This document shows, in pieces, positions 11,201 to 61,000 of a DNA stretch of 64,000 bases (within the stretch, counting starts at the first letter, position 1; every line of letters begins with the position of its first letter). Made by a program: the position numbers and the translations under genes. The notes below the pieces were generated by a model. It was not told the DNA's origin and ran no database searches. It saw nothing but the letters and a program-made list of their open reading frames with translations. Source of the DNA: Monocercomonoides exilis PA203 (taxonomy: Eukaryota; Protista; Preaxostyla). The DNA lies in NCBI GenBank assembly GCA_001643675.2, contig LSRY02000041.1, positions 186,001 to 250,000 of the forward strand, given 5' to 3'.

Positions 11201-14200
11201 AGTTTGGTATCGAGCACCGAATCGCTTCTTACATGCACTCAATCAGAACTATCCTTGGAAAACTGCTCGTTCTTTGCGAATGCGAATTCCAACAACAAAA
11301 TTGGCTTTTGTGTGATGCGTGGGGTTGGAGGAAAAATCAGCCTTGAAGGTGTCACATTCAAGGACTTATCTTTTGAAATAAAACAGCTCTTGGATTTTGA
11401 TGCAAGAGGTGGAGCCGAGATTGAACTGAAGATGGTCTCTTGCCGTTTTGAAAACACAACAACAAATTTGGAGTCTGGATTGGTGCAAATCAGAAACATT
11501 GGGAAGTTGTCTGTTGGCAATTCCACATTCTGCATGGGTGAAGAGCCAGCATGTGCGCTTTTTGAAGTGAGTGGAGTGAGTGTGTTGAATCTGGAGAACA
11601 GCACATTTTCAGGGGTGAGCAGAGGCGCAGGGTGTGGAGGAGTGATTGCTGGGAGAGTTTGTGAAGGAAATTTGATGAACATCAGCGATTGTTCGTTTCT
11701 GTCAAACAACATCACAGAAGGAGGGATGAAAGGCGGGAGCTTGTTTGTTGCTGTGGAAAGCAGCGGGTCATTTGTTTTTGACAACAACACGGTTTCAGAG
11801 AGCAAAGTCATTGCAGAAAATGGGTTTGGGGGAGGACTGTTTATGACACTGGAAGCGATAAATTGTGTGTATTCATTGAAGAATGTTGTGTTTTCGGAGA
11901 ATGGAGCAGAGAAGGGCAGAAACGTCTATCTTGTGTGCCCAACACCACGATTTGTTGTTGAGCCCGGTTTATTTGCAGGATCAGCGGAAAAGGAAATGGG
12001 CGAGGCAGACATGTGGGTGTTTGACGATGTGAGCACACACAAAGTGGATGAGTCGATGAGAAAGTATTTGTTTGTGTATGATGAGCAGACGATGTTTGTT
12101 TACACAGAGCTTGGGGCGAGGATGGAGAGGTGTGGGACAGAAGTGCTGCCTTGTCTGACGATGGATGAGGGTTTTTGGAAGATGGCAGCCATTCAGACGA
12201 GGATGCACATTGTGCGATCGGTTGTTGTGGAAAGTGAGATCAAGCGAATTGGCTTGCCGCTGAGAATACAAGGCTGTGAAGGAAAACGGCCACTTTGAGC
12301 AGACAAATGGAGCAAATGATCTGTGCATTGTGTTTAGCAAGATATTGTTTGTGCTGCCTGGGGTGTCAAACAACCCAGAATTGATAACAATTGGATGTGG
12401 AGAGTTGGATATCATTGATTGCGTTTTTGATGGCTTTTCAGAGGATGTATCTATGCTTGTAACAAATTTGTTGATAATTCACTCAACAGGAGGGTCGGTT
12501 CATGTGGATGATACAGAAATGAGAAATTTGCAGTTTGAAGGGAATGGAGGATTGTGCTGTGCACAATGGGGGATCTCTTTTGATGGAGAAGACAAATTTG
12601 AGGGGAATCAATACGACAATGTCAGCAACCATCAAAGTGGAGAGTGTGAGTTCAATGATTTTGTTGACTGTTTCGTTCGAGGAGTGCATTTCCGCTGTTT
12701 GCAGCAATGTGAAAGTTACAAACTGTTTGAAAGCGGAAATAAATAACTGCACAATTAAAGGGTGTGTTGGGGAGAAAGGAGATGGTGGGTTTATGAGTTG
12801 CCTGATGGAAGGAAGAGATGAGCTGAAGATCTTTAACTCAAGCATGAATGCTTGCAACGCGAGGGAAGATGGCGCAAAGGGAGGGGGAATGTTCCTCGAT
12901 TTTTCGGATGATTCAGAGAATTGCTATTTGCTGGAAAAGGTATCATTTGATTCGAATATGGCAGCGATTGGAAAAGATTTTTTCATTGAATGCTTCGATT
13001 TAAACAAGACTGTAATTGCTTCTCGATTTCTGTTTCGGCTTTCATTCGAAAATGGATCGAGATGCACTGACATGTCTGGAACGGACAGAAACAGAATGGA
13101 AGGAAAAAGTTTAGATTTACTGTTATTTTTAATCCAGAGGTTGGATAATCATATTGAAATATCAAAAGAAGGATTGGATATAATTGGGTGCGGAACAGTT
13201 GAGCATCCATGCTATTCATTCAGTAGAGGCTATAAGAACTAAAATCATTCATCGACTCCTTCACAGATTAGCATTCATGACAAGACGGATATAAGCAACA
13301 CTTTTGATATTTCTTGGTGTGTTATCAGAAAAGCACAAAGAACAACATCGGCTGAAAACGAGTAAGCAACAATTAGATTCAGTTCTGGGATTGAAGGAAA
13401 TGGTGAGGAATATATTTTGAAAAATATCGAAACATCTCAAATTGAAAGCATTTTGCTGAGCATTCCGGCAATGTTCGCAGATGCATTTAAGGCGCTTATT
13501 TGGAGTGGCTCTGCAAACGGGGCGCTGGAGTTTGATTACTGCTCGTTTGGAATGGAATTTAATGATGTGATGCAATTTTGTTTGATTATCACAGCAGATG
13601 GAACAACAACATTGAGAAACTGTGTTGTGGATAGTGGACAGTTTCATAACGCGCCGCTTGAGCTTAAATCTTCAAGTATGATTGGGAATTGCACATTCAA
13701 GGATTTGAGAAACGATTATTGTGCAAAAGGTGGAGCATTGAAAATCGAAGTGAGAGAAAGTCAAAGCACTAACATGGAGGATTCTATCATGGAAGATTGC
13801 CATTGCTATGCACATGGAGGAAAAGGAGGAGGGATCTTTATTGATTACACAGAGACAGTTGTGGATCAGAAGTTTCTGCTGAAAAAACTTACCTTTTTGT
13901 CGAATATGGCAGCCATTGGAAAGAACATCTTCATCAAAGCTTCAGACTTGAATGTGACTGTGAAGAACAGCGCTTTTGATTTTGATTATTCTTCGATGAA
14001 ATATGATAACAACGCTATTGTGGGGAGCGACTTAGTGTTTGATGATATCAATTTGTTTGTTTTTCTAATTGAGTATTCAAATTGGTCGATTCACGTATCG
14101 AGCACTGGCCACGATGTTGCTGGGTGCGGAAGTGAGGAAGTGCCGTGCTGCACATTTTGGAAGGGCGTTGAACATGCCGACAATTCTGGACAAGTTGGAG

Positions 14201-17200
14201 AAATTACCATCGAAGGAACTGTAGAATTGAGGGATAGCTACGATCTGTCAGACTTTATTGTTAAAAGCCAGCAGGATGAAGATTCTGGGATAAAGCATGA
14301 GATTTTACTGTTCAAGAACAAAATAGCAGAAGACAGCAAGGCGTATTTTTGGAATGAAAAGCAGCTTTCATTTTGGATGATGAACTTCACGATAGATAGC
14401 AGTGCGAGTGAAAGGATGCTGCTTATCGAAAGTGGTAAGGGATCCATTTGCATAACGCTATGTTCGTTTCTTTCGATAGCAGCTTCGTCGCCTTCATTGT
14501 GCAAAGATTTCACGTTTCTTCACATGAACTTGGGGAGTCTGAATGTATCAGGGCTGTATATTGAGGTGAGCAGGATGAAAAGCAATGTGATGGATATTGG
14601 GAGCAGCTGCCAGTGTGACATGGCTAACATGAGTATGTTCGGCATCGTGATGGAGGATGGTTCTGTGATTGCGATGGAAGAACTCCTGCCAAGCGAAGGA
14701 AATCAAGAGAGTTATCTGAAGTTGAGAGATTCATCAATCCAACGAGTGACTCGGCTGGCTGGTGGAGCAAGTTTGCTGACTGTACCGACAACGCTGACGA
14801 CTGATGTGGAGATTAACAACAGTGTGCTTGAAGTGTGTGCAGCAGGTGCTTCAGCGAAAGGGGGAGCAGTGTTTGCTGACCTAAGCAATGAAAGCATGAT
14901 CCGAGTGGTGAATTCGAAGGTTATTCAGTGTGGATGCTCTGTGACGATGGGTCGAGGAGGGGGATTGTTTCTGGTGCTGAAGTATTCAGGGGAGCTGGGA
15001 ATGCTGCTTGAGAGGGACGAGTTTGACTCGAACAGCGGAAAGGAAGGGAGAGACATCTTTATTGAGTGCTGGAACATCTCGAGGCAGATCAACGAGACAC
15101 TGTTCAAGCTGGACTTGAGGGAGAGCGAATTTGTGCGATTCAACGCGATATTTGGGATTGAAAAGGAAAGTACAGAAGCAGTGGATCTGATAGATTTTAT
15201 TACGATTTACCAATCTGAGACGATTGTTGTTTCATCGATTGAAGGGAAAGATGGGAAGAATATCAAGAAATGCGGAACAACGAAAGATCCATGCTATTCG
15301 ATTGAATATGGGGTGACGCATCTTACAGTCAGCGATGATCTACGCATTCGTGTAGATGGGACTGGAGAGATAGGAAATGAGTTGGAGCTGAAAGATGTGT
15401 GTGTTGTTTCAAAATCAAGGGATCCAGCGAAAGTGTGGTTTTCTGGTTTGTCCGGGAGCAGTCGAAGTTGGGTGATAGAAGCACAGCTATTTGTCGAGTT
15501 GAATTTGCTGAGCTTTGAATTTTCCTTTATTTTCCCATCTTCTCATCTGCATCTGATTAAGCTGTGCTCAGGAAATGTGTCAATTCAGACATGCTCATTC
15601 AGACCGAAAGAAGGGATTGACTGTTCGAATGTGCCTTCTCTGCTTCTGTGTGAAACCGGATTGTTGGAGATAGATCGATTGCTTGTGAGCAATCTGAAAC
15701 TCGATTCAATTATCGAGCGCTCTGGGGGATCTATCATTGGAGAGCAAATTGAAGCATACAACATTACATTAGTCAATGACAGTGCAATCTGCGATACAAA
15801 TTCTGGAAATAATAATGTGAATGAAAACGAAAATAGTAGAGGGATTACCATTTATTTATCACAGTTTCGCAATATCACTCAAACTTCAGCGAAAGCATCT
15901 GTGTTTTCTGCGAAATACAAAGGAATTGCAGTGCGAATGTTGAATTGCTCTTATTCGAGCTGCAGCTCGTTGATAAGAGCTGGCAGCATAATTTCTGTTT
16001 CGTCAAGCAAGGATTGCTGCGTGGAATCGTGTGTTCTGAGTGGTTTCGCATCCAATGAAGAATTGGAGCCTGCAAATACGATATACGAAGAATTGTGCAA
16101 ATGGAATGGATCTGTTGTTGATTTTGGCAACACGTCAGCACATGTCAGATACACTACGATTGGGAATGCTTCAAGTGGAGGGATGACGATTTGTGGAGGG
16201 AGCATAACAATCGAGAAAGGAGAATTTGCTGACAACGGTGCGTCGATTGCGCAATATAAGTCAGCACGAAGGAACATTGCATGTAGTGGGGATGGCACAC
16301 TGAATATTGTCAGTCTAAAAGGGGGAGATGGGGTGAAAGACAACACCTCACTTTGGATTCTGGACGAAGGATGCGCTTTGTCTGGAATAGCTGGAGAGCG
16401 AGAATCGCCGTTCTTCTTGCCAAAACTCGATTCAGTGGCAGTTGAAGAAGAAGCAGGAGGAGAAAAAGAGAAAACAAAGCTGACATTCAAAGGAACCCTT
16501 CTTTTGCCATGCAACCTTTCGTTCAGGATTGTTGTTGCAAGGAATGATTCAGAATTGGTTGAGACGTTTCAGTTTCATCAAGAAGGATACATCACTGAGA
16601 GCACAGCAACCGGATTAATCTCATCATCAACTATTTCGAAGGCTTCGGAGGAATCATCTGTGGAATGTTTTGTGCTGTTTGGTAAGCCGGACAAACCATG
16701 CTCTACGAATCGCATTGTTCTAAAGAACATAAGTGAATTTGAATCAAAAGGAAATGGAAATCTTGTTGAAGGCGGAAAAGAAGGAAAACTGATATGGCCA
16801 ATTATTATTGTTGTTATGGCACTAATTCTTGTGATTGTGCTGATCGTATCTGTGGTATTTGCAGTTAGATGGAGAAAGCAAAAGAGAAGAACAGAAGAAT
16901 TAGAAGAGATTGTGAACGGCACGGTGAAAAAGGATCCAAAGGCGTTTGAGATGGAAACAATGGAGATGTCTCCAGAAGAGCAGTGGAAAAGGGCTATAAA
17001 GATGGATGAGAAAAGGAATGAAGAGAGAATCAAGAAGAGGGTTTATGATACGAATATGGAACATTCCGAGTCATCAGAGCATCTTCTGTCTGAGAGTGGA
17101 TCGACTGAATACATATTAGGAAAAGATTCAGACAAGATCCCAGAATGGATGCTGGAGAAAGTGGATGAGAAGGAAGAAGAGATAAGGAAGAGAACACCAT

Positions 17201-18102
17201 CGCCATCTGTCTCATCCACGTCAACAACTGACTCAGATTCAACTTTTGTTCGTGGAGAAGATCTGTGTCCCACAACCTCATCGATGTCGAATCTGGTGGA
17301 TGCAATGGCATGCTCGTCTCCACATGAGAAGCTGATTGTGGATCTGAGGGATTCATTATTCATGCTGCTTCACGGAAGGAATGAGAAGAAAGAGATGGCG
17401 ATAGGCACACTGGAGGAGCGGGAGGTGACAGCTGCTCAGATCCTGTTCTGGGTGGCTAATCTCGCACTTCACTCTTTTGATGAAATGGAAAACCCGCTTC
17501 AATCGCTAGCCAACCTCAGTCCTCACATTGTGCTGTTCTCAGAGCATATGGTGATCTGCATTGTGATGCATTCTGACTTATTGTCCGATGATGATTCAGA
17601 TTCTTCATCCATCTCATCATCAACTGTTGCAACTTCTGCAAGTGATGAAAGTGATTCTTTGCCTTCATCAGCCTTTGAGGATGAGGATGATTTCAGGAAG
17701 GAGTGTTTGAGGTGGAAGGCGCCTGAGCTGTTGAATGGAGTGAAGAAGTATGCGACGAAGAAGACAGTGGTGTTTTCGATAGGGATGATGTTGTGGGAGT
17801 GCCTGACCATTCAAATTCCATTTGGGGAGTATGAGGCAGAGGTGGCAGGGCAGAAGATTGTGAATGGGGAGAGGCCGCGGATGGGTGTGGGATGCAGTGA
17901 GGAGATGGAAGAAGCGATGGAAAAGTGCTTATCTCAACAGAAAAATGAGCGTCCGACACTTGCTGTGCTGAAGCGGAAGTTCATCCAGCGGTTTCCGAAG
18001 GGAGCAACGATTGTGACTGTTTCAGACGCAATTGATGTGGAGTATGCGAGCGAAGGGGGAAAAGGTGGAGGCAGCTCGAGCTGTGAATTGGTTTCTTGGT
18101 AG
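8225..18102 (+). pseudogene. Giant single-pass surface receptor (Cys-rich/GGAI beta-helix ectodomain, TM, TKL-type pseudokinase), disrupted
   Basis: Signal-like N-terminus MKFIMCFEMLVCLCA; probable intron 8351-8425/8428; repeated GGAI/GGGL..F..C and CG....PC modules; TM LIWPIIIVVMALILVIVLIVSVVFAV followed by RWRK; kinase C-lobe RWKAPE...VFSIGMMLWE...PF...GERP. Frameshifts near 12290 and 12570; in-frame TAA at 13240 and 13363. Confidence 0.8.
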
Positions 18103-43860: not shown

Positions 43861-44899
43861 GTGTTATTTTTTCAATAGATGAAATGTGAATAAGACAATT
43901 TAATTTGAAAAAAGAAAGTTTATTTGAATTAGAGCCTTTATTTCAAATACAAACAGTTTATTCGAATTAATCAGTTTTATTTGAGAACTGAGCCCTATAT
44001 TTGAGTTTAACATAATTGTGTGAAATGCAATCAAAAAAGCGAAATAATACCGAACATTTTGATGTTTCAAATATGTTCTAAAATGAGGATTGAATCTGAT
44101 TTAAACGATTTTCATTCATTTCTAGTTATATTTTGTAAATATTCAAGGAAAATAGAAGTTTTAACGGAAAAGCAAATTTTATAGGCTAGTTGAAAAAAGT
44201 CTAATACTAATGGGAAAGTTTAACTTAAAGATAATATTTCTTTTTGAAAAATCAAAACATATGACGAACAACTGGCTTTCATATTCACTAAAATGCACTT
44301 TTGTGAAGATAAGTTAATAAGAACTTTTTTTAAAAATGAACATATGGGTCATTCTTTTTGAAAAGTCGCTACGGATCAAAAATTAATCCCATGAAAGTTA
44401 ATTAAAAACACTCCGTTACCATAATACAAATAAAATTATTAAACTTTCACAGTGATGTTTGTTGGTTCATAACAAACTTCTTTATGAGAAGAAATACGTT
44501 TTCATAAAAAATTATATATCAAAAATTTTGATCTAAATTTAAATATTAGTTTTTCAATGAAAAAGTGTTTCACTTGTTTGAACTACTTTGCAATTGTTTA
44601 TAAATGAAATGTGCAAGGTATGTTTCGATTCTTTATCCTGACAAACTTGATTTACAATGTTAATTCGTATTTTCATTTGAATAGAATTTTCCATTAACAT
44701 TGTGTACATGAACTTGACATAAATGCAAAAACTGAACACACATATTCGATGCATCTGAAATTATGATAAATTTAGTGGTTTTCATTTTATTTTAACAAAT
44801 ATATTATTTTATTTATTTATTATTCAATCATGTTTTTTGAATTGAATAGTCAACAGTTGATAGCCAACAATTGTCTTTTCAATAACAATACAAATAAAG

Positions 44900-45699
44900 A
44901 TCAGAATTCGGGAGCAATATCAGGATGTTGAAGTGTAAGTTCAGAGAATGGAGGATCGATGATGCTGTGTATTGGGAATGAAAATGAAGTGAAAGTGAAA
45001 GGTGGATCTTTTGATGGGTGCTTTTGCTCTGCAACATATGGACTTGGAGGAGGAATTCTTCTTCGATTATCGACTGGAAATCCCGATTTCCTGATTTCTT
45101 CTTCGTTTGACACAAACACAGCCAAATGGGGGAATGATATCTTTGTCATTTCACCCAATCTGGAAGAAACAGCAAAATCAGAAAACATCACATGCGTGGA
45201 AGCCTCTTTGGATTCTCTTGATAAGGTGAGAGGATATGACAATGGAAATACGAGTGCAGCCATTCCTCTGTGCATCTATCTCCTCAACCCAGAAGAAATC
45301 TTTGTGAGCAATTCTGAGGCATCCGATCATTCACATTGTGGAATAGTCCAATTCCCTTGTTTGACAATGAAGCACACCCTCACACGTTTTACAGGTGAAA
45401 AGAAAGTTGTTGTCAATGGAATGATTATGATGAGTGATGAATTGATATTTGAAGGACAGAAGCATAAAATCAGAGGAAATGATGACCAAAGTGGTTTGAC
45501 AGCCTCCGATGCAAGTTTAACACTAAACTCAGCGATGATAACAGCAGGTACTGAAACAGAATTATCAAAACTCATCTTCTCTCTTTCATATTCCCTTCCT
45601 CTTCACTCCATTTTCAATGTCTCTTCATCATCATCTCTTCTTCCTCCTCATCCCACTACTCTTCTTCTTCTATTCCAAACACAAAAATATGCACATTGA
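44900..45699 (+). pseudogene. Internal fragment of the giant surface-protein family
   Basis: GLGGGILLRL...NTAKWGNDIF...IPLCIYL...DHSHCGIVQFPCLT modules match the repeat style of 8225-18102; no signal peptide, TM or kinase part. Confidence 0.75.
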
Positions 45700-46147
45700 T
45701 CTGATAGCGAAACTTCAATACACTTGCATCCCTTTCACCATTGTTATCTCATGCAGTTGCGCCACAGCACCGTCCCACATACAGCCTACAGTATCAAAAC
45801 CACAAGTTCAGATACACTTTTCTTCTTTAACTACCATGAAATCATCATCAAGTCCATATCTTCTCTTTACAGATTCTTTTTCTTTAGAAACTCAAGAAGC
45901 ACTTTTTTCTCCGCATCCTGCGACATATTCTTCCTGTCTCCACACTCTGCCTCCAGCACCCTCCCTTCTGTTTTCACCCCACCATGAGCCCTCACTCTCT
46001 GCTGCAACACTCATTCGACTTCCAAGTCACCAAATGCACTGGATATAGAACAAACACTTTTCTCAGCAAGAAGCGTAACGTGCAAAACTGCGAAAGAGAG
46101 CTTTCACACCACAGTGCAATGCTTTATGTCCTTTTCGCACTGCCACT

Positions 46148-48331
46148 TTGCAGCGTGATCGATTCTGGCGCTTGCATCAGCACCTCTGCGGACCTCTGCG
46201 AAGCTGTCGTTCTCATCATCACCACATCACATGCATACGTCCTCACCTCATGCATCTTCTCTTACTCCACATACTTCATCGCCTTCCGCCCTTCCTTATT
46301 CACCTCCCACTCTTCGCTCACAACATACAAAAACTCCGGCACAACCTAATGCTTTATCTCCATTCGTTTCCCCAAGCCATTCAACTCCAGCCCTTGTTTC
46401 CTCTCTTTCCTATTCCTTCCTCTTCCTCTTCCTCTTCTTCTTCTTCTTCTGTTTCTTCTTCTTCTTCTTCTCGTTCTCATTCATTTTATTCTTCTTCTTT
46501 TTCTTCTTTCTCTTCTCATTCTCCTTCTTCTCCTCTTCCTCCTCCTTATCCAAATTCATCATCGTCTTTTTCCTCTTCCTCTTCAACATCCAACTTCTCC
46601 TCCCACTCTGCCTCTTCCCATGCTGAAGTGCTTAACAAGACTCAAACTCTTTCTTGTTCTCCATTGAAGCTGATGCAATACATATCACCAATCAACCCTT
46701 CTTCTCTGCCCCGAGTTCCTTTGCAGCCGTCTTCTGTTCCGACCCGCTGGAATTCGAGTGTGCTTTCGTCGTCTGCATCTTTCAACCGCTTCTCTTCTGC
46801 CTCTGCTTCATTCAGCACATCCGAGAAGAGGCCTGTTCAGACACAAACACAGCAGACATTCGATGACGTGAGGCTGGTTGTGCAGACGGGAAAAATACTC
46901 CAAACAGCTCAGAATGCAAACTCTGTAAATAATGGTTCGAATAATTCCACTTCTTCCTCTCAGACATCTTCTGCTTCGAATACTCAGCTGCAGTCACCCA
47001 GGCAGCCCAACAAGACACTAATTCCTGTGTCCCCCACTCCCACTCGCATAACAATACAAACAGTGAATGAATCTTCAATCACTCCAACCGGAAAAGGAGG
47101 AGAAAATATTCAGTTGCAGTCCGTGAACTCTGCGCTCAGTGTGATATCGACAAACAAGACGAAAGGATCGATAAATTTGACACTTGGAACTCAATCTACT
47201 CAAATGCCACTTGGAAATTTAGCGTCTTCATCCTCCTCCTCCCCTTCTTCTTCCTCTTCCTCTACTACTTCTTCAATATCTACTTCATCTTCATTGACAG
47301 TTTCCGCCTTTGCCTCTATCTCAGCCACTTCCCCCATCTTCCTTGTACTCTCCATCACTCAAACAACCACGTCAATAGCACGCACACACTCATCAACAGC
47401 TCACCGCGTTGAAATAAGCACCTCAAACACTCCATTTTCTACCACTTTTGCGTTAGCCACGCTTCACTCTTTCTTTGATGACACATCGTATTCTGTGTCT
47501 GCATCACTGTTGGCTCCGACGATTGTGCTTGGGGGATCTTCAATTGCGTTTATTGCATCATCATCATCTTCTTCTTCGTCGAAGTCTTTTTCCCTTTCAC
47601 CTTTATCTTCCTCTGCTTCTTCTTCCTTGGCCTCTCTGACTTCTCCAACATCTCTCGCTTCCTCCTCTTTCTCTGCTCTTCTTTCCTTCTCTCAGCCCAT
47701 CCGGCAGATGTCCACATCCACCTCGTCTGGCCCTGCACTCACCAGACAACCTCAGCCTTCATCTCAGTCTCAGTCTCAGTCTCAATCTCAATCGTTGTCT
47801 TCCTCTTTGAACACGAACTCTCTCCTCACCCGCATATCCTCAGCCACATCGCAGCATTCACTCACACAGGCAAGCTCTCCCTTGCATCAGTCTCATTTGG
47901 CTCAGCCAGAAAGCCTCCAACAATCTGCTGCTGTTGCAGCCCCAACAACCTCATCAAACTTACCAGCTGCAGTCACTTCGTCTGTTATAATCTCCACCAC
48001 TTCCTCCTCATCTCTTTCATCAGCTCTGTCTGCTCCTCTTTCCTTCTCCACTGCTGATGCCCCACCGCTTCTCATTGGAACATACTCTTTATCTTCACAC
48101 ACCTCGTCGCAGAAGCGCTTCTTCTATTCGCCTCTTCGTCTGTTCAAATCCACCACTCTTCTTGACGATGTGCCACCTCCGATGCCTTCGTCCCATTCGT
48201 CGCACAAGTGCTCTTCTTCTTCGCATCAGGAGATGATGTGGTCGATGGAGCTGCACAAACACCGTAAAGCCAATGATACAAGCACATCGATGAGCAACTT
48301 GTCAGAACACACGCATTTGACATTCAGCTAA
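46148..48331 (+). pseudogene. Ser/Thr-rich coding-like segment, probably a fragment or chimera
   Basis: 727-codon open frame with host-like poly-Ser composition, no clear start and no recognisable domain. Confidence 0.4.
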
Positions 48332-49000
48332 AAGCAGGTGCTTCCAGAGATGCATGTGCTGAGGCTGATGAAGAGAGAGAAGAAGAGGAATGTGACAGAT
48401 GAGATATTTGAGATGATGAGGAGGATGTGTTGAAGGAACAGACACTCAAAAAATTGAAATTGAAGATGACGAAGAAGAAGAAGAAACAAAATTGTGATGA
48501 AGATCTTCTGCTGCCATCTTCAATGCCATGGGAGCATCCATAGGAACAACCGCTGAGAAAGCGTGGTCGGTTAGAAATGGTGTTCGAAGCATCACAGCCG
48601 TATACACCAATCATCTGCACAGCATTCGACTGTCTTATCTAAATAAACTCCTCTTCTGAACCGAGACTCTTGTCTGACGTGTTGAATGAATCCTGCACCG
48701 ATCCTTCTGCACCTCTGCCTCCATTCACTCACCTTGTCATATCAGCTGCGTCTCCGGATCTGGTTCCCCGTCAAACACACTCCCAAACGCATGTACTCAC
48801 GTCGTCACTGCACAATTGGTTAGAATCTTCTTCACATCACCTACTTCTGCTCCTTCTCTAATCTGCCGTGAAGCTTCAATTCCCTTCTCCGTTGTGAACT
48901 TCACCTTCACTGAATCATCCATGTGCAATATCTTACGACGCTGTCACTCCACAGCACAGCAGCCGCGGCTTCATCTCAATGTGCGCATTCGCATGGCGGA

Positions 49001-50580
49001 TTAGCTCATCTTGGTTATTAAAATACCACAAACAGGCTCGTGCTCCTCTGCTATGTACATGAAACGTTCGACAAGCTCACAAAACTTGTCTGCCAAGTCT
49101 TCTTCAATCGTGTGCTTCATCCATGCCACCCCACTGTTGCATATAGCACCAGAATCTCGCACAGCTCCAGAAACGACTGCTTCTTCTGTGTTGTGCTTCT
49201 GCTGTGTTTCCGTTCGTTGATTCTCGACGCTGCACGACTTCTTGGCTGCAGCATCTTCAGCTCGTCCAGCATCGTCACCGACTGCCCATCTGCAATGCAC
49301 CGCTTCATTATCCACGCGCTCCCCTTTAGCATCGGCACACAGATCATCAGCCCGCCACCAGATTAAACAGCAACGAGTTTTCAGCTCTTCTGCCTTCGCT
49401 CGACCTCTCCTCCCCTTTTCTTTTCTTCTTCTTCTTCCTTTCGTCGTCCTCTTCTTTTTTTTTCAACAAAACAAACAACTTTCTTCCCCAGCTTCCTCAT
49501 CGGATTTGTCTTGTTTCTCATTCATCTCCAAACCATTTTTCGACATTTCCACCTGTCCCTCATCTTTCTTTACTCCATCTGAAGAAATGCCCAAAGACCC
49601 ATCTGCTGCTTCTTCTTCAACTCTCCTATTCCCTTTTTAAATGCCACTGGACAGAGAAGAACTGCACACTTCTGGTTCAACTGAATGCTGCTGGTCTGCA
49701 CCCACCTCAGCATCAGCCTTCACAAACCTCAGCCCACTCAGCCCAAGCGCCTCTACAACCAGCGGCGCAATCGCTTCTTCCAGCTTCCCCTGGTTCTCTT
49801 TTATTCTCTCCACAAACTCTCTGTGCGCTGTCGGATACCCGCCTTTCTCCTCATTCCCATCACCTCCCTCTCTCCCTCCATCTTTGCCTCCATCTTCTTC
49901 TCCCTTTTCTTCTCCCCTTTTGCCTCCCTTTTCTCCTTCCTCTGCCTCTTCCCGCTCCTCCAGCACAGCCAGCTCAATCGCTGCTGGCGACTGAACCACA
50001 TCTTCCATCTTCAACCTTATTGCCTCCAACACTTTCTCCACAATCTCCCCTTCTTCACACACTGCAACCTCTCACCCCATCACTTCGTCGTCCAGCTTCA
50101 CCATTAATTACACTTCTCCAACGGAAGCAGCAACTATTCAAACAGATCGCAGATCGAAGGGAATGCATTCACATCTACCGCCGCAAAGATCCGCTTGCTC
50201 CCAGACTTTGTACCCGCCGACGCTGCAAGCAACGGAAGCGTCCCCACCAGCGGAACCGAAATCATCTCCGAAAGCACCACATAACAGATGCACATGCACA
50301 ACACCCCCATTCAGCACCGCAAGCCGCTCCACAACATATCACCGCAGCTTCTACAGCGCCCGATGCGACAGCAGCAGCTGCAGCGACAGCGGCATGTGCC
50401 TCCCATACACTCCAGCCTCCTCAGGCACCACAATCTGCAGCCGACTCTCGAAGTCGTCCATCGCTGCTGCAGAAGTGTATGAAGCCATCACCTCCAAGGC
50501 ATCCGAAGGATCAATCGTAAGCTCCGATAATGATGGCTACTCATTCTCTGAAGATTTTTTCTCTTCGCTTTTCCTCCTGC
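49001..50580 (-). pseudogene. IQCH: IQCH-like pseudogene fragment A (middle region)
   Basis: Minus-strand translation through stops and frameshifts: SRLQIVVPEEAGVYGRHMPLSLQLLLSHRAL*KLR...VPLVG..TKSGSKRIFAAVDV...KLDDEVMG, collinear with the IQCH ATP-grasp-like region. Confidence 0.75.
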
Positions 50581-51547
50581 TGAATGGAGAAGAAGACAAA
50601 GAAAACAAAAAGTAATGAGAGAAGATATGACTGCTGTGCTGCCCCGGACACAAGAAGGTTGATGAGAAATTTCCCATCACGTCAGCCAGAAGTTACACCA
50701 GAAGCACATGCAATATCTTCATTCTTATCAGAATTGTTTACTAGCAAAGAAAACACGATTTTTTAATGGTATTTCAAATGTTTAAAGAAGGATATTTTTC
50801 CATTATTTGTCAATATTAAATGAAAGGGATAAGGAAAAGGCACATACTGAGAAGTTTGAAACTTGTTGAAACAGATTGTTTGAATTAAAATATTAGAAGA
50901 GACTGAATTTTTGAGTTTATCAAAAACGGAGATTTATTGAAAAAATCATATATCAAACTTCAATTCTTTATAATAACATTAATAATTGTCTATGTTAACA
51001 ACTTTTTGAATAACTTTCGATTGTTACGAGTGAAGTTTTGATGAATTTTTCATGTTTGATAATTTCTAATAAAAAAATTCAAGAATTCAAGCAAATTAAT
51101 TTTGTTTGGTTCACAACAAAAGAAAATAATAAAAACTTAGATAGCATCCGTAAATTCATAACGAATATTCGAACTAATGAAATGAAATTGAAGAAATTAA
51201 AACTTATCTAACATTTGATTCAAATAGCTCGTAAGCAATAGCAAACAAAAGAAAATTCTATTTTATTATCAACGTTCGATATGTTATCATCAGATTTATG
51301 AAATGTTTTTCTATGATAAGATGAAAAAACTGACAATATAAAATAATTGTCAATAAATGATGGGAACGGAATGATCACTATTTTTTGATCATTTTTGATC
51401 TGATTTTCAGATCAGTTAAACGTTTGCGACTTTTCAAAAAGAATGACCCATATTTTTTTAAAGAAAAAATTTTAATTTAACAGGTGTCTCAAAAACAAAG
51501 GTGTTGGATTTTGAAGAATAGCCAGGAATGCTTTTTTCAATTCACAC

Positions 51548-51789
51548 TGGATGATTCTTTTTGAAAAATCACAAATGTTTTATTTTCTAATAAATCTTAA
51601 ATTTCATATTTTGCAAAATATTTTGTTAACAAATATCAAACTTCACTAAAATGGAATCTTAAACTTGATAAAACTATTTCCAACATTCTTAAGGAGATTT
51701 GAAAGCTAAAACAAAAATTTGAGCAAAATATGAAAATTTTGAAGTATTTGAAAATTAAACATTCGTGACTTTTCAAAAAGAATTACCCA
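51548..51789. mobile_element. MITE family T, ~240 bp
   Basis: TIRs TGGATGATTCTTTTTGAAAAATCACAAATGTTT / TGGGTAATTCTTTTTGAAAAGTCACGAATGTTT; CAC on both flanks. Confidence 0.8.
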
Positions 51790-52665: not shown

Positions 52666-55600
52666 GAAATCATTTTTAATGCATTAAAGTCAAAACTGAA
52701 AAGTTTTAACTTTTTTCAATAAAAACTTTTTCTTGTGAAAAAGTATAAATATCTATAATATTAGCAATCATAGAACAATTTTTCTTTAGTGCGAATTATT
52801 CCTCTCAAAAGAAATATAAAATTTGAAGAATCTACAAGTCGAAAAAAATTATGATTTTCGAATTATCACCCATAAATTTGTGGACTGCTTCAATATCAGT
52901 GTGAGTGTCACCACAGCCACTTTCCACTTCCCGTACAAACTGTTTTTCAATGATCCGCATGCGTTTGTGGGAAGCTACCAAACATTTGTTGAAACTTATC
53001 TGTTCCAATTCCTTGTTCCACACACATCCAGCAAGTTCCACCTGTCCGATGCAGAAGTCGAAATTGCTCGACACTGAAAGCCAATCGATCCCTGCTGATC
53101 CTTTGCGACTGGCTTTGAGTGCATGGATGCCTCAGCTGTGCACAAAATGATCAGCATCAATTGCTCAACAGCCATCAGCCTTCCAGCAAAATTGATGAAC
53201 TTCACCTGCCACTCGTTGCACAGCGAGGAATCAGTGTGATCAATGTTGCTGTTCTAGGAAGACAGCCAGAAATCAAATCCATTCCTTCCGAACAGTTGGA
53301 GCCTCTCCCTTTCATGGATCTCCATCCAATTATCAGATGGGTTTATTAACGAAGTCAATGCAATCATTCTCAGCAATCAGGGTTCATTGCTTCTGGAAAC
53401 GTTTTTTTTGACTCATACACAATTATCACTGAGCAAGGTGTTTAACCTTTGCTGCTATGGAAGTGGAAAATCTCGTATGAACGAAGTTAGATTAAACAAA
53501 CATCCATCTCATGTGCTCAATGTTTCTGTAACATGAAGGATCTGCAAGCTTATTCGATGCCATCTAATTTCTTCATGCAGCCTATCCAACTGCTCACTTG
53601 TCGAAGCGTAATGCAGTACTAACCGCGCTCCCAATCACCCTTCATCAATTTCCATTTTCAGATCGACTTTGGTGGATATGTGGCAAACAGCGAACAAGTC
53701 GTCTGTTGTTTGGGGCAGTGGAGAAGATGGTGTTGAAGTTGTTGTGAACAAGACAAATGAGGAGTGGTGCAGGTCTGTCAGCGCAGAAAAGAGCGGTTCC
53801 GTGCATTATTAATTGATCAGCTTGAAATAGGTTATAATACTTCATCTTGGCATTAATCCTGTGGATGGACTTCACTGAAACAGCTAATGCTCATAGTATA
53901 TGAAATATATTTTCGCAATGGAAAAAAATGAATCTGAACATATAAACAATTAACAAATCCACTTTTTAACTGAAAGAAGTTTTCAAACTATTCTATTAGT
54001 CGAATTGCATGAGATGTTTAAAGATAATGAAATTTATTTATTTCCATTTGGACTTTTTGTTCGTGCAAACATAGAAATAAAAAAGAAATTACTTTGCTCA
54101 CTGGCCAGCAATTGGATGAGAATGCTTCAATGAAAACGGCTTTTTTGTTTTATAACTGTTTCAATCGAAAAATAAAAGATAATCATTTCTAAAAATCAAA
54201 AAAGATTACTGAAGATTCTGATACAAGATGATTTCAAAATTTTGAAAAATATCTTCATATGCATTATCAGTCAGTTTGGTGCACAACCTTTTCAACACGA
54301 AATGATCGTTCAAATGAAAAGAAGAAAAAATCAACATTTTCAAAAAATATGTGGGGGAAAATATGGACTTTCAAGCTTTTTATGCACGACTCGTCAAAAA
54401 AAATTTTATTGCATATTTGCAAGGATTTCACAAAGTTGAATAAAACAATCCATGTTTTTCGGGCGGCTCATTCTTTGTTCAAATGTTACTGAACATTTAT
54501 AAATTTTGATCATTTCCCACAAAAGATCAGAAATTTGATTATTTCAAAACACGATGAAAAATATAAAAATCCACTCTTGGAAACTTATTAATTCTTTTTA
54601 ATATCGCAAAAAAGATTCAAAAAGTCTGGAAATAATTTCTAAGTGCAAAAATGAATAATTAGTGGGATATGATCTACCAACGAAAATATTGTCCAATTGC
54701 CTATGTGTCAATAGTGAAAACAAAGTGATGAAATGCACAACAAGATGAAAGTCAATTTTCATCAAAAATATCAGAACGAGCAGAAAGCAACAAGTACTGC
54801 ATTCTTCGTTTCTGGGATTGATCTTTTCATTTTGCTATCATTTGATTCATTTGGTGTTGGGGCCAAACGGTAATTCCTTCATCACCTACATAACCTCTTC
54901 ACATTTCAACTGTCGACCTGAAAAACCACTGTTCCATTTGCGCTTTCACCGATTAAGGTGAGCATTTTTGGTTGGTTCACCTTTCTGATCCGAATATGGA
55001 TATCGTGCTTATGCTTCTGATGGAGCTTCTGTCTGATATGAAGATTTATCTCAAAAAAGAGTCTTGTAGAAAAATCATCTCATTAATCGCCTCTTCTTTT
55101 GGTATTTTCAAATTCTTCATCTTCTTCATAATCTTTCTCTTTATCCTCCCCTTCTTCTTCGCAATACGCAACAAACCTCTTCTTTTCGCCATTTCAGATG
55201 CAAAGAAAAGGGGTAAGTCAGATGCATCGATATCGAAGGATGAATATTCTTCACTTCCTCTCACACTTCATACGCAAAGATTGTCAATAATGACTGCTTC
55301 ATTCGCATGGGAAGGAATGATGAACATTATCAAATTCCTTTGAAGATTTCTTAGTGGGATGCATGTGGTATTTTTGCAAGTCAAAAGAAGCCATCACAAT
55401 GAGCTCGAGAAGCAATGTTGAGGAAACACTTTGATTAAGCTCACTCTTTTGATCAAAAGTGTAATGTTACAGAACAATTAGAAGTTCTCAAAGATGCTTT
55501 TTCGCTCAACTTGTGATTGCACTTTTGTGAAAATGTCTGTTTTGATGGATATTGAATTATAAAGGAAGCAGAGCTTAGGGCTGTGGAAGTGAATTATTTT

Positions 55601-55707
55601 CTACGAAACAAAAATATGCCTGGTCTGCTGCGGATTTCGTTCGTAATTGCACATCTGGTGTCTGAATCTCCGTAGTAGATGCGTACTGAGAGACGAAACG
55701 AAGCGAA

Positions 55708-57525
55708 AAAGTGATGGAGCAAGGGGTTGCAGTGTGCGAAGTGGGAGAGATTGTTGAGAAGGGGCTGTCGGCAGCGGGGCTGAGGATGGAGGATGTGGTT
55801 CTGTTACCAGCAGCGATTGCACTGGCGGCGCTGGAGGAGCGAGAAGAGGCAAAGGAATGTGAAGGGAATGAGGAGAAAGGCGGGTATCCGACAGCTCACA
55901 GAGAGTTTGTGGAGAGAATCAAAGAGAACCAGGGGAAGCTGGAAGAAGCGATTGCGCAGCTGGTTGTGGAGGCGCTTGGGCTGGTTTGGCTGAGGTTTAT
56001 GAAGGTGAAGACACATCCAGAGGCAGACAAGCAGCATTCAGTGGAATCTGAAATGTGCAGTTCTTCTCCATCTGATGGCATTCAGCAGGAGAACAGGAAA
56101 GCAGCAGAAGAAGCAACAGATATGTCTTTGGGTATAACTTCAGATGGAAGTGCAGATGGAGTGAGAAAAGATGTGGAACAGGTGGAAATGTCTATGAATG
56201 GTCTGGAGATGAATGAGGAGCAAGGAAAAGAGGGCAGCTCCATTGATTTGGAGAAGGAAGAGGAAGAAGAAGAAGAAGAGGGGTAGATTCTGGATGTGGA
56301 ATCGCTGCTGAGTGTTCCTGCGCACCCGGAGTGTGTGACGCTGGTTGACGAGAGTGCGTATGGGAGCTGGCGGGACTATCTGGTGACGATGACGGTGACG
56401 GGGGCGCTGGTGGAGCTGTGTGCGGAGCGGGAGCGGATTGTGGGGAAGCCTGTTGTGGAAGGGATGATACAGCCGGACGGGACGATGAGCATCACGTTTA
56501 TTGGGGAGAGGCTGTTTGGGAGGAGAGAGAAGAGAAGAGAAGGGTGTGTGGGTATAGGTTGGGGTATGGGGGTGGGTGGAGGTGGATGTTTGGCATCAGA
56601 TGGAGTGTCGTTGCATTTGAGCTCGGACAGGCAGAGAGAGAGGATGGACGAGTTTGTTGCGATAGTGGCGGTTGTGCCGCAGGAAAGTGTGCCGTCGATT
56701 GCTCTGCGGGATGCGACGTATGCGATTGGGCAAATGTGCCACGGGAAAGGGATGATTGGGGTGTTTAGTGTTTCGTATTGTGTGTTTGTGGACGAGTGGG
56801 AGTCGCTGCGGATGTGTGCGGTGGATCTTTCGGTGGGCCCGCTGGCAGCGTCGTCGGCGTTCCGGTGGATGTCGTATCTGCTGCAGGGGGGCATTGAGAT
56901 CGCGTCTGGAAACTACCTCCTTCCGCGCCGCGGCGGCACTGCTGCTTTGCATGTGCTTGCTCCGTTCTCTGATTCTGTGCACTCTGCCTCTGCTCGGCCT
57001 CAGGGCTGTTCGAGCGGAGCACACAGGTCGGCCTCGCCGCGCCAGGTGGAACGTGTGGAGAGAGTGTCTGCTCAGGCGGCGTGTGGCTCAGCCAGCGCCT
57101 CTGCACAGGCGTGTGCCTGTCTCCCTCCAGCAGCGACACGCAGCTTTGTGATAGTGCAGCCGTTCTACCAGTCGGAGCTGTCGCGTGTGCCGCACAAGCA
57201 GTTCTTTTCTAACTGCCGGGAGCACAACATGACGTTTGATTTTGAGGGGAAGTGCGGTGTTCTGTTCCAGCTGTCCGGGCATCTCATCGCGAGGGTTGTT
57301 GGGTTTGTTGCGTGCGAGCTGTTGGTGGATCTTGGAGTGCGGACAGCGATGCGAGCGCAGGAGAAGGTGGAAGTACAGATGCTGCACTGTGCGTTTGTTT
57401 CTGCGCTGAGCTGTGAAGACAAGAAAAGGATGGAAAAGTGGATACGTGGAGAGAATGGGGCTATTTCAAGAGGGACTGTGCTGGGGAGGTTGAACTTTGT
57501 TGGAAATGGAATTGAGAAAAGCTGA
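55708..57525 (+). pseudogene. IQCH: IQCH-like pseudogene fragment B (C-terminal region), 5' truncated, in-frame TAG at 56284
   Basis: YGSWRDYL...GALVE...IQPDG...VVPQESVP...IGQMCHGKGMIGVFSV..CVFVD...RSFVI...FFSNCREHNMTFD..GKCGVLF follows the IQCH C-terminal domain. Confidence 0.85.
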
Positions 57526-58248
57526 AGAGAGAAAAAGAAAAAGGAGACTTGGCAAAAGCAGGTCTTCATGGCTTGTTACGCATTAGCGCTTAAGTCAATC
57601 TGATTGTTAATTATGGTCAGCTTCAAGTTTGTTCCATTTTCATTTAAACTTTCTTTGTTATTTTTATGTTAACCATCGTTATGAAGGAGATTTTGTTCTT
57701 ATGTGTATTGTTTTATGTTTTGCATCAATTGAATTGTTTTCATTTAAATTGAATGAACGATGTTTTTTGTGATCCATATTCCAATTTATGCACATGGAAT
57801 ATTAAATAATCCGATTTTCATATTTGTTGATGCTTTTTGTTGAACATGAAGATGTCCTTTCAACTATCATTATCCTTTGAAAAGTTTCGTTAGCGATTGG
57901 ATTTGTCATATTTCAAAGGTTAATACTGACAAAAAATCACAGATGATAACACCAAAACAAATAATACCATGAAAATTATTTGAAATGAAGTTGCTTTGAG
58001 TGAAGTGGATGATTATGCTGAAGTGAACTTTGCATTCCAAAGAATAAAATATTTGCTCATTCTTCTTTTGTGTATTCATGAACATTGCTTGTCCTCAAGC
58101 GCTTCTCCGTTTCTTTGAAGGTGTTAATCAGCTTGTGAGCTATTTCAATTATAAATCAATCAGCAAATGAGAAAATAATATATGATAAGAGTTTGAATGA
58201 ATTTGTTGAAGATATAAATATGTAAAATATTAAAAATATTTGAATTTT

Positions 58249-58700
58249 TTATGCATTTACACACAAATAAAAACTTTCTATCATTTTCGCTTGCTTCAAT
58301 CGCTGCTCTCTAAGATCCGCAAATAAATCGTCCTTGTTCATTGCAATCATCTTCAGCAGCACAGATTCCTTCAACGTCCAAGTCCCATGTTTCCCTTCGC
58401 TTCCATCTCCTTTTTTCAGTTTCTCCGGAATATATCGATTTGAAAATTTTTTCCGAAGCCTTTTCAGTTCACTGAATTTATCTTTCATCAACTTCCAGTA
58501 CAGCGGATTCACTGCTTCCACAATGAATGAAATGTCGGCTGCTTTGACATAACAAGCCTTATCATCGCATCTCAGCACACATAATTTGGATGCGCTGCGT
58601 TTGAAAACAATATGCGTGCTGCTGTTGCTGCTTCTAAATGCTGGTTGGTTAATAGTACTGTCGTATTTCACTTGTTCAGAGCAGCTATCGGAGCAATATA
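58249..58700 (-). pseudogene. Unidentified coding-like fragment
   Basis: ~150 open codons with protein-like composition (LCVLRCDDKACYV...HGTWTLKESVLLKMIA); no start or family recognised. Confidence 0.35.
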
Positions 58701-61000
58701 CGAAATGAAATTTGTTGAAATAAAATAATAATAATGAATGAAAGCAGATTATTTTGAGTGGAAAAAAAACCAGAAAAATGTATTGTATTGCAATAAAATA
58801 CAGACAACAACGTTGAAATTCTTCAAAACAAAAGTTGCAAACCAATTGAATCAAGCATTTTTGAGCAGTCGTTTGTTAATATATTCAGTTTTCCAGTTTT
58901 CTCATCCAAGTTACCCTCTCTCACGATTATTGCAGTTCCCTCTCCAACGCATACACTTCTCAAACCACCTGGATTAGGAACAACATGTGCAGATCAAGGC
59001 TCAAAAGTGGATGTTGATGAAGCAGCCGAAGGCACTTCAGATGGAGGATAAGATAAGGATGAGAAGAAAGTAAAGAAGAAGAGAACAAAAAAGAGGAGAA
59101 AGCAGAAAACTCATTATTTCCATAGTCAAACAGTTGGACGCTTTGAAAGTTGAAAAAACAATTTCAAAAAAACTGAAAAAATTGAACAAAAGAAAGTCTG
59201 CTTTCTTTCCTAAAGGCGAATCAAGGACGATAGAGTTGCATTGGTGCGTGATAAAAAATAAAAGGCACTTCCCTCTGGTTTAATTTTCATTGTCCAACAA
59301 ATACAACAGAAAAAAAAGGAAATAGTGGAAAACAGTTAAACACAGATGTTTCCTATTTGAATCACAAAAATGGCAAACTCATTTTAAGTTGCAACATGAG
59401 AATTTGATGGCCATTCAAACAACAAATTCTCAAATACGAAGAAGCTTCTCTTTTCATCAACCAAGCATTAAATATCGTCAATGAAGAGATCGAAGGAAAA
59501 TAAGAAGAAAACTCATAACCCACAAAAATGCAACTTTAAATGAATTGTCACTGAGAATAGCGCTCAAGATAAAAAGTGCTGTTATCTGCGAGAAAAATGA
59601 TTTTTAAAAAAAAATAAAAATTAATTATGCATTGATTATTAAAATTCTATTTTAGAACACATGCACCCCTCCTATTTCATATACAGAAGATTTTCCAATC
59701 ACTGATGCTTCCATTCTCCTTTTCCATTGTTTCCCAGTGCTCATTTTTTCATAATCCTTTAGTCTCCATAAATATCCAACTTTCCACGTTGTCGTTTTCT
59801 TTCCTCATCAAAAATATATTTCCTCATTTTTTCTTTCCATAAGCTGTCCAATTAAAGACATTCTTCGTTTCATTTTTGTCCAAATGGTTTAAAATCGAAA
59901 TTGTTTTGGCATACTGCAACTAAAAGCACATCAGTTATTTTTCACAATTTAATCGTTCCAAGAAAAAATAGAAGTTATATAAGTTAATTATAATCCCTTT
60001 GTTATGAAAGCATGAAAAAATTTCAAAAAAACTTGAAATTGAGTAAGTAAATTTAAAAAACAAAAAATTTTGATCCTATGATCACTTTGATCAGAAATTT
60101 TCAAATTAATAATTCTCTCGAAATAAGGCTTTTCTGAATGTTAAAATAGTATTTCTGCATTGACATCTAACGTGTGCATGTTTGAATTACGAAAAAGAGA
60201 CAAAATTTGAGGATAAAAAATAAAGTGTGTTTACAACTCTCTTATCGTTTTCAATTTTTTTCACTTTTTAAAAACTTCATTGTCTATAAATCCATTTATT
60301 TCAGACATATAAACTACACTCTATAAAACTGTTAACTTAAAGAACAGAATAATAAAAATAAATGAATATTTTTAGGTTTCATTGATGTCCTTCAAGTTTC
60401 ATTATGCCGGTTTTCAAATTAATTCACGTAAAAAAGAAATGGCAAACACACTGAAACTTTAAATTTGATTTTAAATTTTTTTTGCTGATAAATTATCCTC
60501 TGTGACTGTTTTTCATTGATGATTTTGAAATTGCCTGAGTCTGTTTTTTAACATTTCACTATTTCAGTATCTTTCTTTATTCTTCGAAAATCTTAATTGA
60601 TTCAATGAATTCACCATAATTTCATAGGTACTCTCAAATAGTAATTTTATGTTTTTCAATAACCCTTTATAACAATTGTTATTCAATATCTTCCTCATAT
60701 TTGTTTGACAATCGATTTTTGATGCAATCTTCTTTGCTATATTTCGTTATTGATTAAAACATGTATTATTTAGTGCAAAGTTTTTTCAGAATCTTTGTTT
60801 TGGATAATATTTCACAATAATTTGTTCAATAATTTTCAAGAAACCTTATTTGTTATTATTTTCCATCACAAAGTCAATGTTGCAACATAAATAAATTCTC
60901 AAAACTCATTTCTCATTCGTTGAAGTCAAACATTTTCAGTTGCAAATTTTTTCACTGAAAACGCTTGAAGTGCCATATTTTCCCCCATGCATGCAATTAA

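Follow-up and report, generated by a model that had tools for sequence, protein, structure and literature searches.

Pack-type transposons are known from plants (PMC8903248, PMC6379663), where Pack-MULE and Pack-CACTA elements are non-autonomous, have terminal inverted repeats (TIRs) plus a target-site duplication (TSD) at their boundaries, enclose pseudogenic fragments of unrelated host genes in both orientations, and are amplified as a unit. A 4-bp TSD of the form AWWT or AWDT is the hallmark of Sola1 and of its MITEs (miniature inverted-repeat transposable elements; PMC3845634), just as AWWT duplications (ATAT, AAAT, ATTT) are the hallmark of Sola2 (PMC3627910); the transposases of these groups, which were described by Bao et al. 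2009 as cited in the same two papers, measure 630-888 aa (PMC3845634, PMC3627910). Here we describe an element with features of both systems in the oxymonad protist Monocercomonoides exilis PA203. The window that we analyzed is a stretch of 64,000 nucleotides (G000:C38:186001-250000, from contig LSRY02000041.1), and the genome searched was the nanopore assembly of this strain, with 82,301,135 bases in 101 contigs (PMC8767320). A first-pass annotation of the window had marked a 7.1-kb segment as a candidate fragment-capturing transposon. Our analysis supports, with a probability of about 0.85, that window positions 44346-51449 (7,104 bp) are a copy of a non-autonomous cut-and-paste Pack-type DNA transposon that was amplified together with a dead cargo from several host genes.

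The element is enclosed by a perfect 24-nt inverted repeat, with GGGTCATTCTTTTTGAAAAGTCGC at its left end on the plus strand and the exact reverse complement at its right end, and ATAT stands immediately outside each repeat (Table 1). These features had been recognized in the first-pass annotation, and they hold, with the true ends lying one base further in than it had placed them. That annotation had also stated that neither end has a nearer partner and that a 240-bp MITE with related TIRs sits 100 bp away. When the window was searched for the 24-mer with up to 3 mismatches, the single further match (51765-51788) was the right end of this fold-back MITE, so that neither end of the element has a nearer partner; 100 shuffles of the window gave no 24-mer match at the same threshold. 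Genome-wide, we found 857 matches with up to 2 mismatches (434 forward and 423 reverse), mostly in 240-bp MITEs, and none for a reversed 24-mer used as a control. Many of the matches form inward-facing pairs, either ~216-240 bp apart, as in the MITEs, or 5-8 kb apart, and they are not mostly solo or randomly oriented. The 24-mer is the TIR of a genome-wide transposon family that includes several hundred 240-bp MITEs. Two scans of metagenome contigs for this TIR found nothing. A composite of two whole MITEs was considered as the origin of the window copy and rejected, as its ends resemble those of the MITEs over merely 24-34 bp (34 bp at the right end).

Further analysis of the sequence next to the TIRs defined the duplication. 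Among the 100 TIR flanks listed, position -4 is nearly always A and position -1 nearly always T, the middle two bases vary, and ATAT is the commonest 4-mer. The two flanks match each other in 12 of the 13 long elements read (18 of 22 pairs once MITEs are counted), and the matched flanks include the non-palindromic pairs AAGT/AAGT, ACAT/ACAT, AAAT/AAAT, and ATTT/ATTT. The two ends of a pair are flanked by one and the same 4-mer, directly repeated, which makes for a TSD of 4 bp with the form A-N-N-T, mostly ATAT.

The 7.1-kb element moved as one unit to about 40 sites. Four copies on contigs C5, C21, C28, and C58 (L001-L004; we use C for contigs of the assembly and L for individual loci read) align with the window copy over its full length at 89-92% identity, and their homology begins and ends within a few bases of the TIRs. 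A fifth copy on C18 is 83% identical to the window copy, and many others are 67-80% identical. Two internal segments used as queries matched ~27 and ~40 loci, respectively; about 35 diverged copies lie at unrelated sites beyond the four full-length ones. The same cargo combination occurs at ~40 loci in all, and homology stops at the TIRs. In 12 of the 13 long elements read, the sequence beyond the matching 4-bp flanks is unrelated. This result bears directly on whether solo TIRs or MITE ends have been paired by chance around a pseudogene graveyard, or whether a segmental duplication has occurred. The region is rich in transposons and has a second IQCH fragment only 4 kb away (55696-57735), and both points speak for such an explanation. 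However, that fragment lies within a different TIR-bounded element, and the 13 long elements agree in their ends, have unrelated flanks, and, in all except one, show 4-bp duplications that match. Because the copies end at the TIRs with matching flanks and are unrelated beyond them, we consider chance pairing and segmental duplication ruled out for all practical purposes.

We noticed that two elements, L006 (C9) and L008 (C58), have an identical sequence of 8 bases (AGTTAGTG) directly past the right target duplication. These two elements may have landed in copies of one repeat.

The interior of the element is a patchwork of dead internal fragments from at least three, probably five, host genes, present in both orientations. 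Five mapped segments account for ~5.3 of the 7.1 kb (~75% of the interior mapping to other loci), and what remains is made up of two AT-rich arms in which there are no open frames (Table 1). All three fragments that the first-pass annotation had named, a surface-protein and a Ser-rich fragment on the plus strand and an IQCH fragment on the minus strand, could be traced to parent genes. The surface-protein fragment (cargo 1) stems from the interior of a gene of the giant receptor-kinase family and is 84-86% identical in nucleotides, and 79% in amino acids, to the intact giant genes L023 and L024. At least 149 genomic matches belong to this family, mostly in open frames of 2,500-2,650 aa, and the parent has a C-terminal kinase domain; this family probably corresponds to the tyrosine kinases whose overlap with unclassified repeats is noted in the genome paper. 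The Ser-rich fragment (cargo 3) is 86% identical in nucleotides to L025 on C11, a 2,525-aa open frame with a Pfam RRM_1 domain and no TIR nearby. Copy L029 contains residues 761-1680 of this RRM gene without interruption, and aa 836-1187 are missing from the window copy as judged by tblastn; therefore, the 7.1-kb form arose via an internal deletion. The IQCH fragment (cargo 5) shows 80% nucleotide and 61% amino acid identity to L019, a 1,553-aa parent with Pfam IQ and ATP-grasp_IQCH domains. A sister-copy fragment of cargo 5 matched ATP-grasp_IQCH with E=1.7e-5, which is below Pfam's cut-off, and at least 163 IQCH-like pieces are present genome-wide, most of them with stops. The parents L019, L023, L024, and L025 all have long intact frames and Pfam domains, lie outside any TIR pair, and show no copy of the TIR in their vicinity. 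For the two other segments, both C1 loci matched by cargo 2 lie a few kb from giant genes, and cargo 4 has weak protein matches to the beginning of open frames of 1,942-2,829 aa.

Table 1. Features of the 7.1-kb element and of the neighboring MITE, in window coordinates
Feature	Position	Strand	Remarks
Left target-site duplication, ATAT	44342..44345		Same 4-mer at 51450-51453
Left terminal inverted repeat, 24 nt, perfect	44346..44369	+	Sequence match
Left subterminal arm, AT-rich, no parent found	44370..44875		First ~290 bp common with cargo type B
Cargo 1, internal fragment (aa ~741-980 of ~2,600) of giant receptor-kinase family	44876..45635	+	One in-frame stop
Cargo 2, probable host-gene fragment	45808..46470		74-75% matches at C1:2420564-2421225 and C1:2528738-2529405
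Cargo 3, Ser-rich piece of 2,525-aa RRM-containing gene	46556..48485	+	aa 740-835 and 1188-1680; two in-frame stops
Cargo 4, probable host-gene fragment	48664..49462	-	84-86% matches at C17:72674 and C33:596166
Cargo 5, internal piece of IQCH-like gene (aa ~591-1028 of 1,553)	49505..50753	-	Seven in-frame stops
Right subterminal arm, AT-rich, no parent found	50754..51425		Last ~100 bp common with type B
Right terminal inverted repeat, 24 nt, perfect	51426..51449	-	Sequence match
Right target-site duplication, ATAT	51450..51453		Equals left 4-mer
Neighboring 240-bp fold-back MITE, same TIR family	51549..51788		4 and 2 mismatches to 24-mer; 100 bp from element

Host relatives of this cargo were also encountered outside the element. 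The window itself holds a host member of the giant receptor-kinase family at 8435-18102 (+), with two long open frames (1,287 and 1,561 aa) that are 41% identical to L023 over 1,498 aa. The IQCH-like parent L019 (G000:C25:2064500-2074499) and the locus L020 (G000:C25:2041000-2050999) form an inverted segmental duplication that is 98.5% identical over 5.8 kb and covers part of the IQCH-like gene, with a 1,553-aa frame in one copy and a 758-aa frame in the other.

The perfect TIRs around decayed cargo had led to the suggestion that mobilization followed the decay. To follow this up, the stops that the window copy shows in its parents' frames were compared with those of the other copies. Each of the 10 in-frame stops recurs at one or more of the other loci, and a single one of them is found in all five copies. 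Therefore, the cargo had died before the element was mobilized. The youngest blocks between copies differ by 0-3%, and the perfect TIRs would reflect recency.

Identity between copies is distributed in blocks. Within the same copy pair, blocks of 97-100% identity adjoin blocks of 69-83%, and this pattern varies from pair to pair. For instance, window positions 50096-51449 are 96-99% identical to L003 and 68-83% identical to L001 up to ~51100, and positions 46346-47345 are 98-100% identical to L001, with part of this stretch just 88-92% identical to L003. Thus, the copies are recombinants of a few lineages. We also considered selection on the conserved blocks, as would be expected of an element RNA or a cis site, and rejected it: the blocks that are 96-99% identical among five close copies are only 58-75% identical to L027-L029, a result that points to shared lineage and recombination instead of constraint. 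Exchange with host genes was likewise explored. Over 1,373 bp, the IQCH piece of L021 agrees with the host gene at 93.7% identity, with borders within ~60 bp of those in the window copy, while elsewhere L021 matches the window copy at 75-79%; this IQCH cargo seems to have been copied anew from the IQCH-like gene of the host. For the giant-gene cargo, conversion by extant host genes was not supported, as its distances form a star-like matrix and the host sequence most similar to the window fragment reaches only 80-81% in amino acids. Together, these results show that a single assembly gave rise to the mosaic, that stop codons had interrupted it before it was spread in one piece to about 40 sites, and that the copies have exchanged blocks. 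The capture history that had been proposed for the segment stands insofar as host-gene fragments are carried; it was one mosaic that was amplified and then reshuffled, not a one-off capture.

Harbinger elements have a target duplication of 3 bp, Tc1/mariner elements of TA, piggyBac and Kolobok elements of TTAA, and Ginger2 elements of TATA, and none of these groups fits the 4-bp A-N-N-T duplication found here. The closest match is to Sola1 and Sola2, with which the M. exilis element shares a 4-bp AT-rich duplication with AWWT preference (ATAT, AAAT, ATTT) and short TIRs starting with GG. Sola2 elements of dictyostelids are also chimeric and have interchangeable passenger regions (PMC3627910). 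Unlike in Sola, the duplications of this TIR family also include ACAT, AAGT, ACTT, and AGAT, and no DDD transposase was found with the TIRs of the element. The analogy with Pack-MULE and Pack-CACTA that had been drawn for this segment is supported, with some differences. TIRs with a TSD, an interior in which we found no transposase gene, host fragments whose intact parents lie elsewhere (three of which were read), and movement as a unit are all features of Pack-type elements. However, the TSD is of the 4-bp AWWT type instead of 9 bp (MULE) or 3 bp (CACTA), which suggests Sola rather than either plant group. Other differences are that the host is an oxymonad protist, that a single mosaic occurs in ~40 reshuffled copies where plants have mostly individual captures, and that no autonomous partner has been identified for the M. 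exilis element. As for the mechanism, a transposase encoded elsewhere would recognize the shared TIRs and move the element, and this enzyme would be of the Sola type because of the 4-bp target duplication. The fragments would have entered the element when repair of the excision gap switched templates, as proposed for plant Pack-type elements.

The interior had been described as having no recognizable transposase. The transposase search consisted of Pfam runs on ten open frames of the window and the sister elements, with no spliced gene models built or searched, and it detected no transposase domain within any TIR pair; the sole DDE_Tnp_4 match among these frames lies outside one. No reading frame is kept across copies, and the long plus-strand frames in the middle of the element are an artifact of a pyrimidine-rich strand in which stop codons are rare. 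These observations weigh on whether the element is a decayed autonomous one, with part of its interior being the remnant of its own unrecognized transposase gene. About 25% of the interior (arms and junctions) has no identified source, and Pfam may have no model for Sola transposases, both of which would leave room for such a remnant. Nevertheless, this unexplained sequence is AT-rich, lacks open frames, and comes in stretches of up to 0.7 kb, which is too small for a Sola transposase, and the GC-rich interior maps to host genes. Given this and the lack of a conserved frame, we regard a decayed autonomous element as very improbable.

A Harbinger-type transposase was also considered as the partner of the non-autonomous element. 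At least 147 Harbinger-type frames are present in the genome, some of which adjoin copies (L015 and L016). The TIR matches near the frames at these two loci are separate MITEs. PIF/Harbinger elements have a 3-bp TWA duplication and DDE_Tnp_4 inside their TIRs, and the duplication here is 4 bp long. Harbinger was thus rejected as the partner, as its DDE_Tnp_4 frames lie outside the TIR pairs, share no TIR with the element, and do not fit in TSD length. Apart from this question, contigs C62 (~227600-235300) and C22 (~115700-125600) contain DDE_Tnp_4 open frames of 350-520 aa, mostly stop-free, that recur every ~2.35 kb in one orientation and are tandem arrays, not dispersed insertions. A pogo-type transposase remnant with DDE_1 and HTH_Tnp_Tc5 domains was found at L014:6929-7999 (-), where it adjoins both a Harbinger open frame and one of the MITEs with the 24-nt TIR in a transposon pile-up.

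Another candidate source of transposase was found in a scan for the UCH family, which uncovered candidate transposases with a UCH domain, a multi-copy class of open frames ~900-1,200 aa in length. Their presence would suit an origin of the element by internal deletion from a large autonomous transposon of the Sola2 type, in which a transposase-bearing ancestor took up the cargo and the transposase was later lost. The element would then still be cargo-carrying and non-autonomous, but would not itself capture fragments. This origin would also explain the subterminal sequences of ~290 and ~100 bp that the window copy (type A) shares with another cargo type, B, which are unlike MITEs and could be remnants of a longer ancestor. 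However, no UCH-bearing frame lies within 35 kb of any TIR match listed, and the Pfam search of the open frames yielded no transposase remnant in the interior. Moreover, one element with a different cargo, L009, resembles a MITE with a 4.8-kb insert, which fits capture by a non-autonomous element. Therefore, although a transposase-bearing ancestor, rather than a non-autonomous element, may have picked up the cargo, we consider descent from a Sola2-type transposon by internal deletion possible and on balance somewhat unlikely.

The same TIR encloses at least two cargo sets in addition to that of the Pack-type element in the window. Type B comprises L005, L007, L008, and L010, and a blastn comparison of these four with the window element gave matches confined to 44342-44630 and 51351-51453, the parts of the arms that the two types have in common. 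Their cargo comes from another region of the giant gene (aa ~1568-1856); L005 has the IQCH piece as well. The second set is that of L009 (5.06 kb), which is single-copy as a whole and whose two ends have 47 bp and ~190 bp in common with the MITE; ~1.4-2.1 kb of its interior have relatives of 73-90% identity at 40 or more other loci, and the remaining interior is unique. With at least three unrelated cargo sets, the TIR family could be live and still capturing, with cargo that keeps exchanging with its source host genes. We view this extension as unlikely. If true, parts of an amitochondriate eukaryote's largest gene family would be moved and reshuffled by these elements, which might also give rise to chimeric genes.

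A second long element of 6.6 kb, which belongs to another TIR family, lies in the window at 54352-60987 and is bounded by a 30-nt inverted repeat with 87% identity (TGGGGGAAAATATGG...). It carries IQCH residues 828-1530 at 55696-57735 (+), where a 409-aa open frame matches ATP-grasp_IQCH with E=2e-13.

Several points count against the interpretation of the 7.1-kb segment as a Pack-type transposon amplified with dead cargo. A transposase-bearing member of the family had been called for, and among the loci read and the TIR matches listed we found no such element with these TIRs. Neither an empty site nor an insertion polymorphism was seen. Mobilization in trans and the assignment to Sola are suggested by two features of the sequence, the TSD and the termini, and recent activity is likewise suggested by two, the perfect TIRs and the blocks of 97-100% identity. 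Among the five segments, parents were read for cargo 1, 3, and 5, and no parent was found for the two arms (~1.2 kb). Lastly, as the assembly is based on nanopore reads, some frameshifts could be sequencing errors, which does not apply to the shared stop codons.

According to the M. exilis genome paper, 35% of the assembly consists of unclassified repeats, which overlap with a tyrosine-kinase gene family (PMC8767320). Elements such as the one described here explain part of this overlap, as they have placed dead pieces of kinase-family, IQCH-like, and other genes at dozens of sites. Fragments spread in this way inflate apparent gene families and can mislead gene prediction. In a literature search on Monocercomonoides together with transposable elements, we found no account of such elements. 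The kind of element is already known, and the window copy is an ordinary example of a Pack-type element with dead cargo; what is new is the transposon group and the lineage. Pack-type capture of gene fragments, which has been described mainly in plants, is thereby extended to a Sola-like transposon group and to metamonads.

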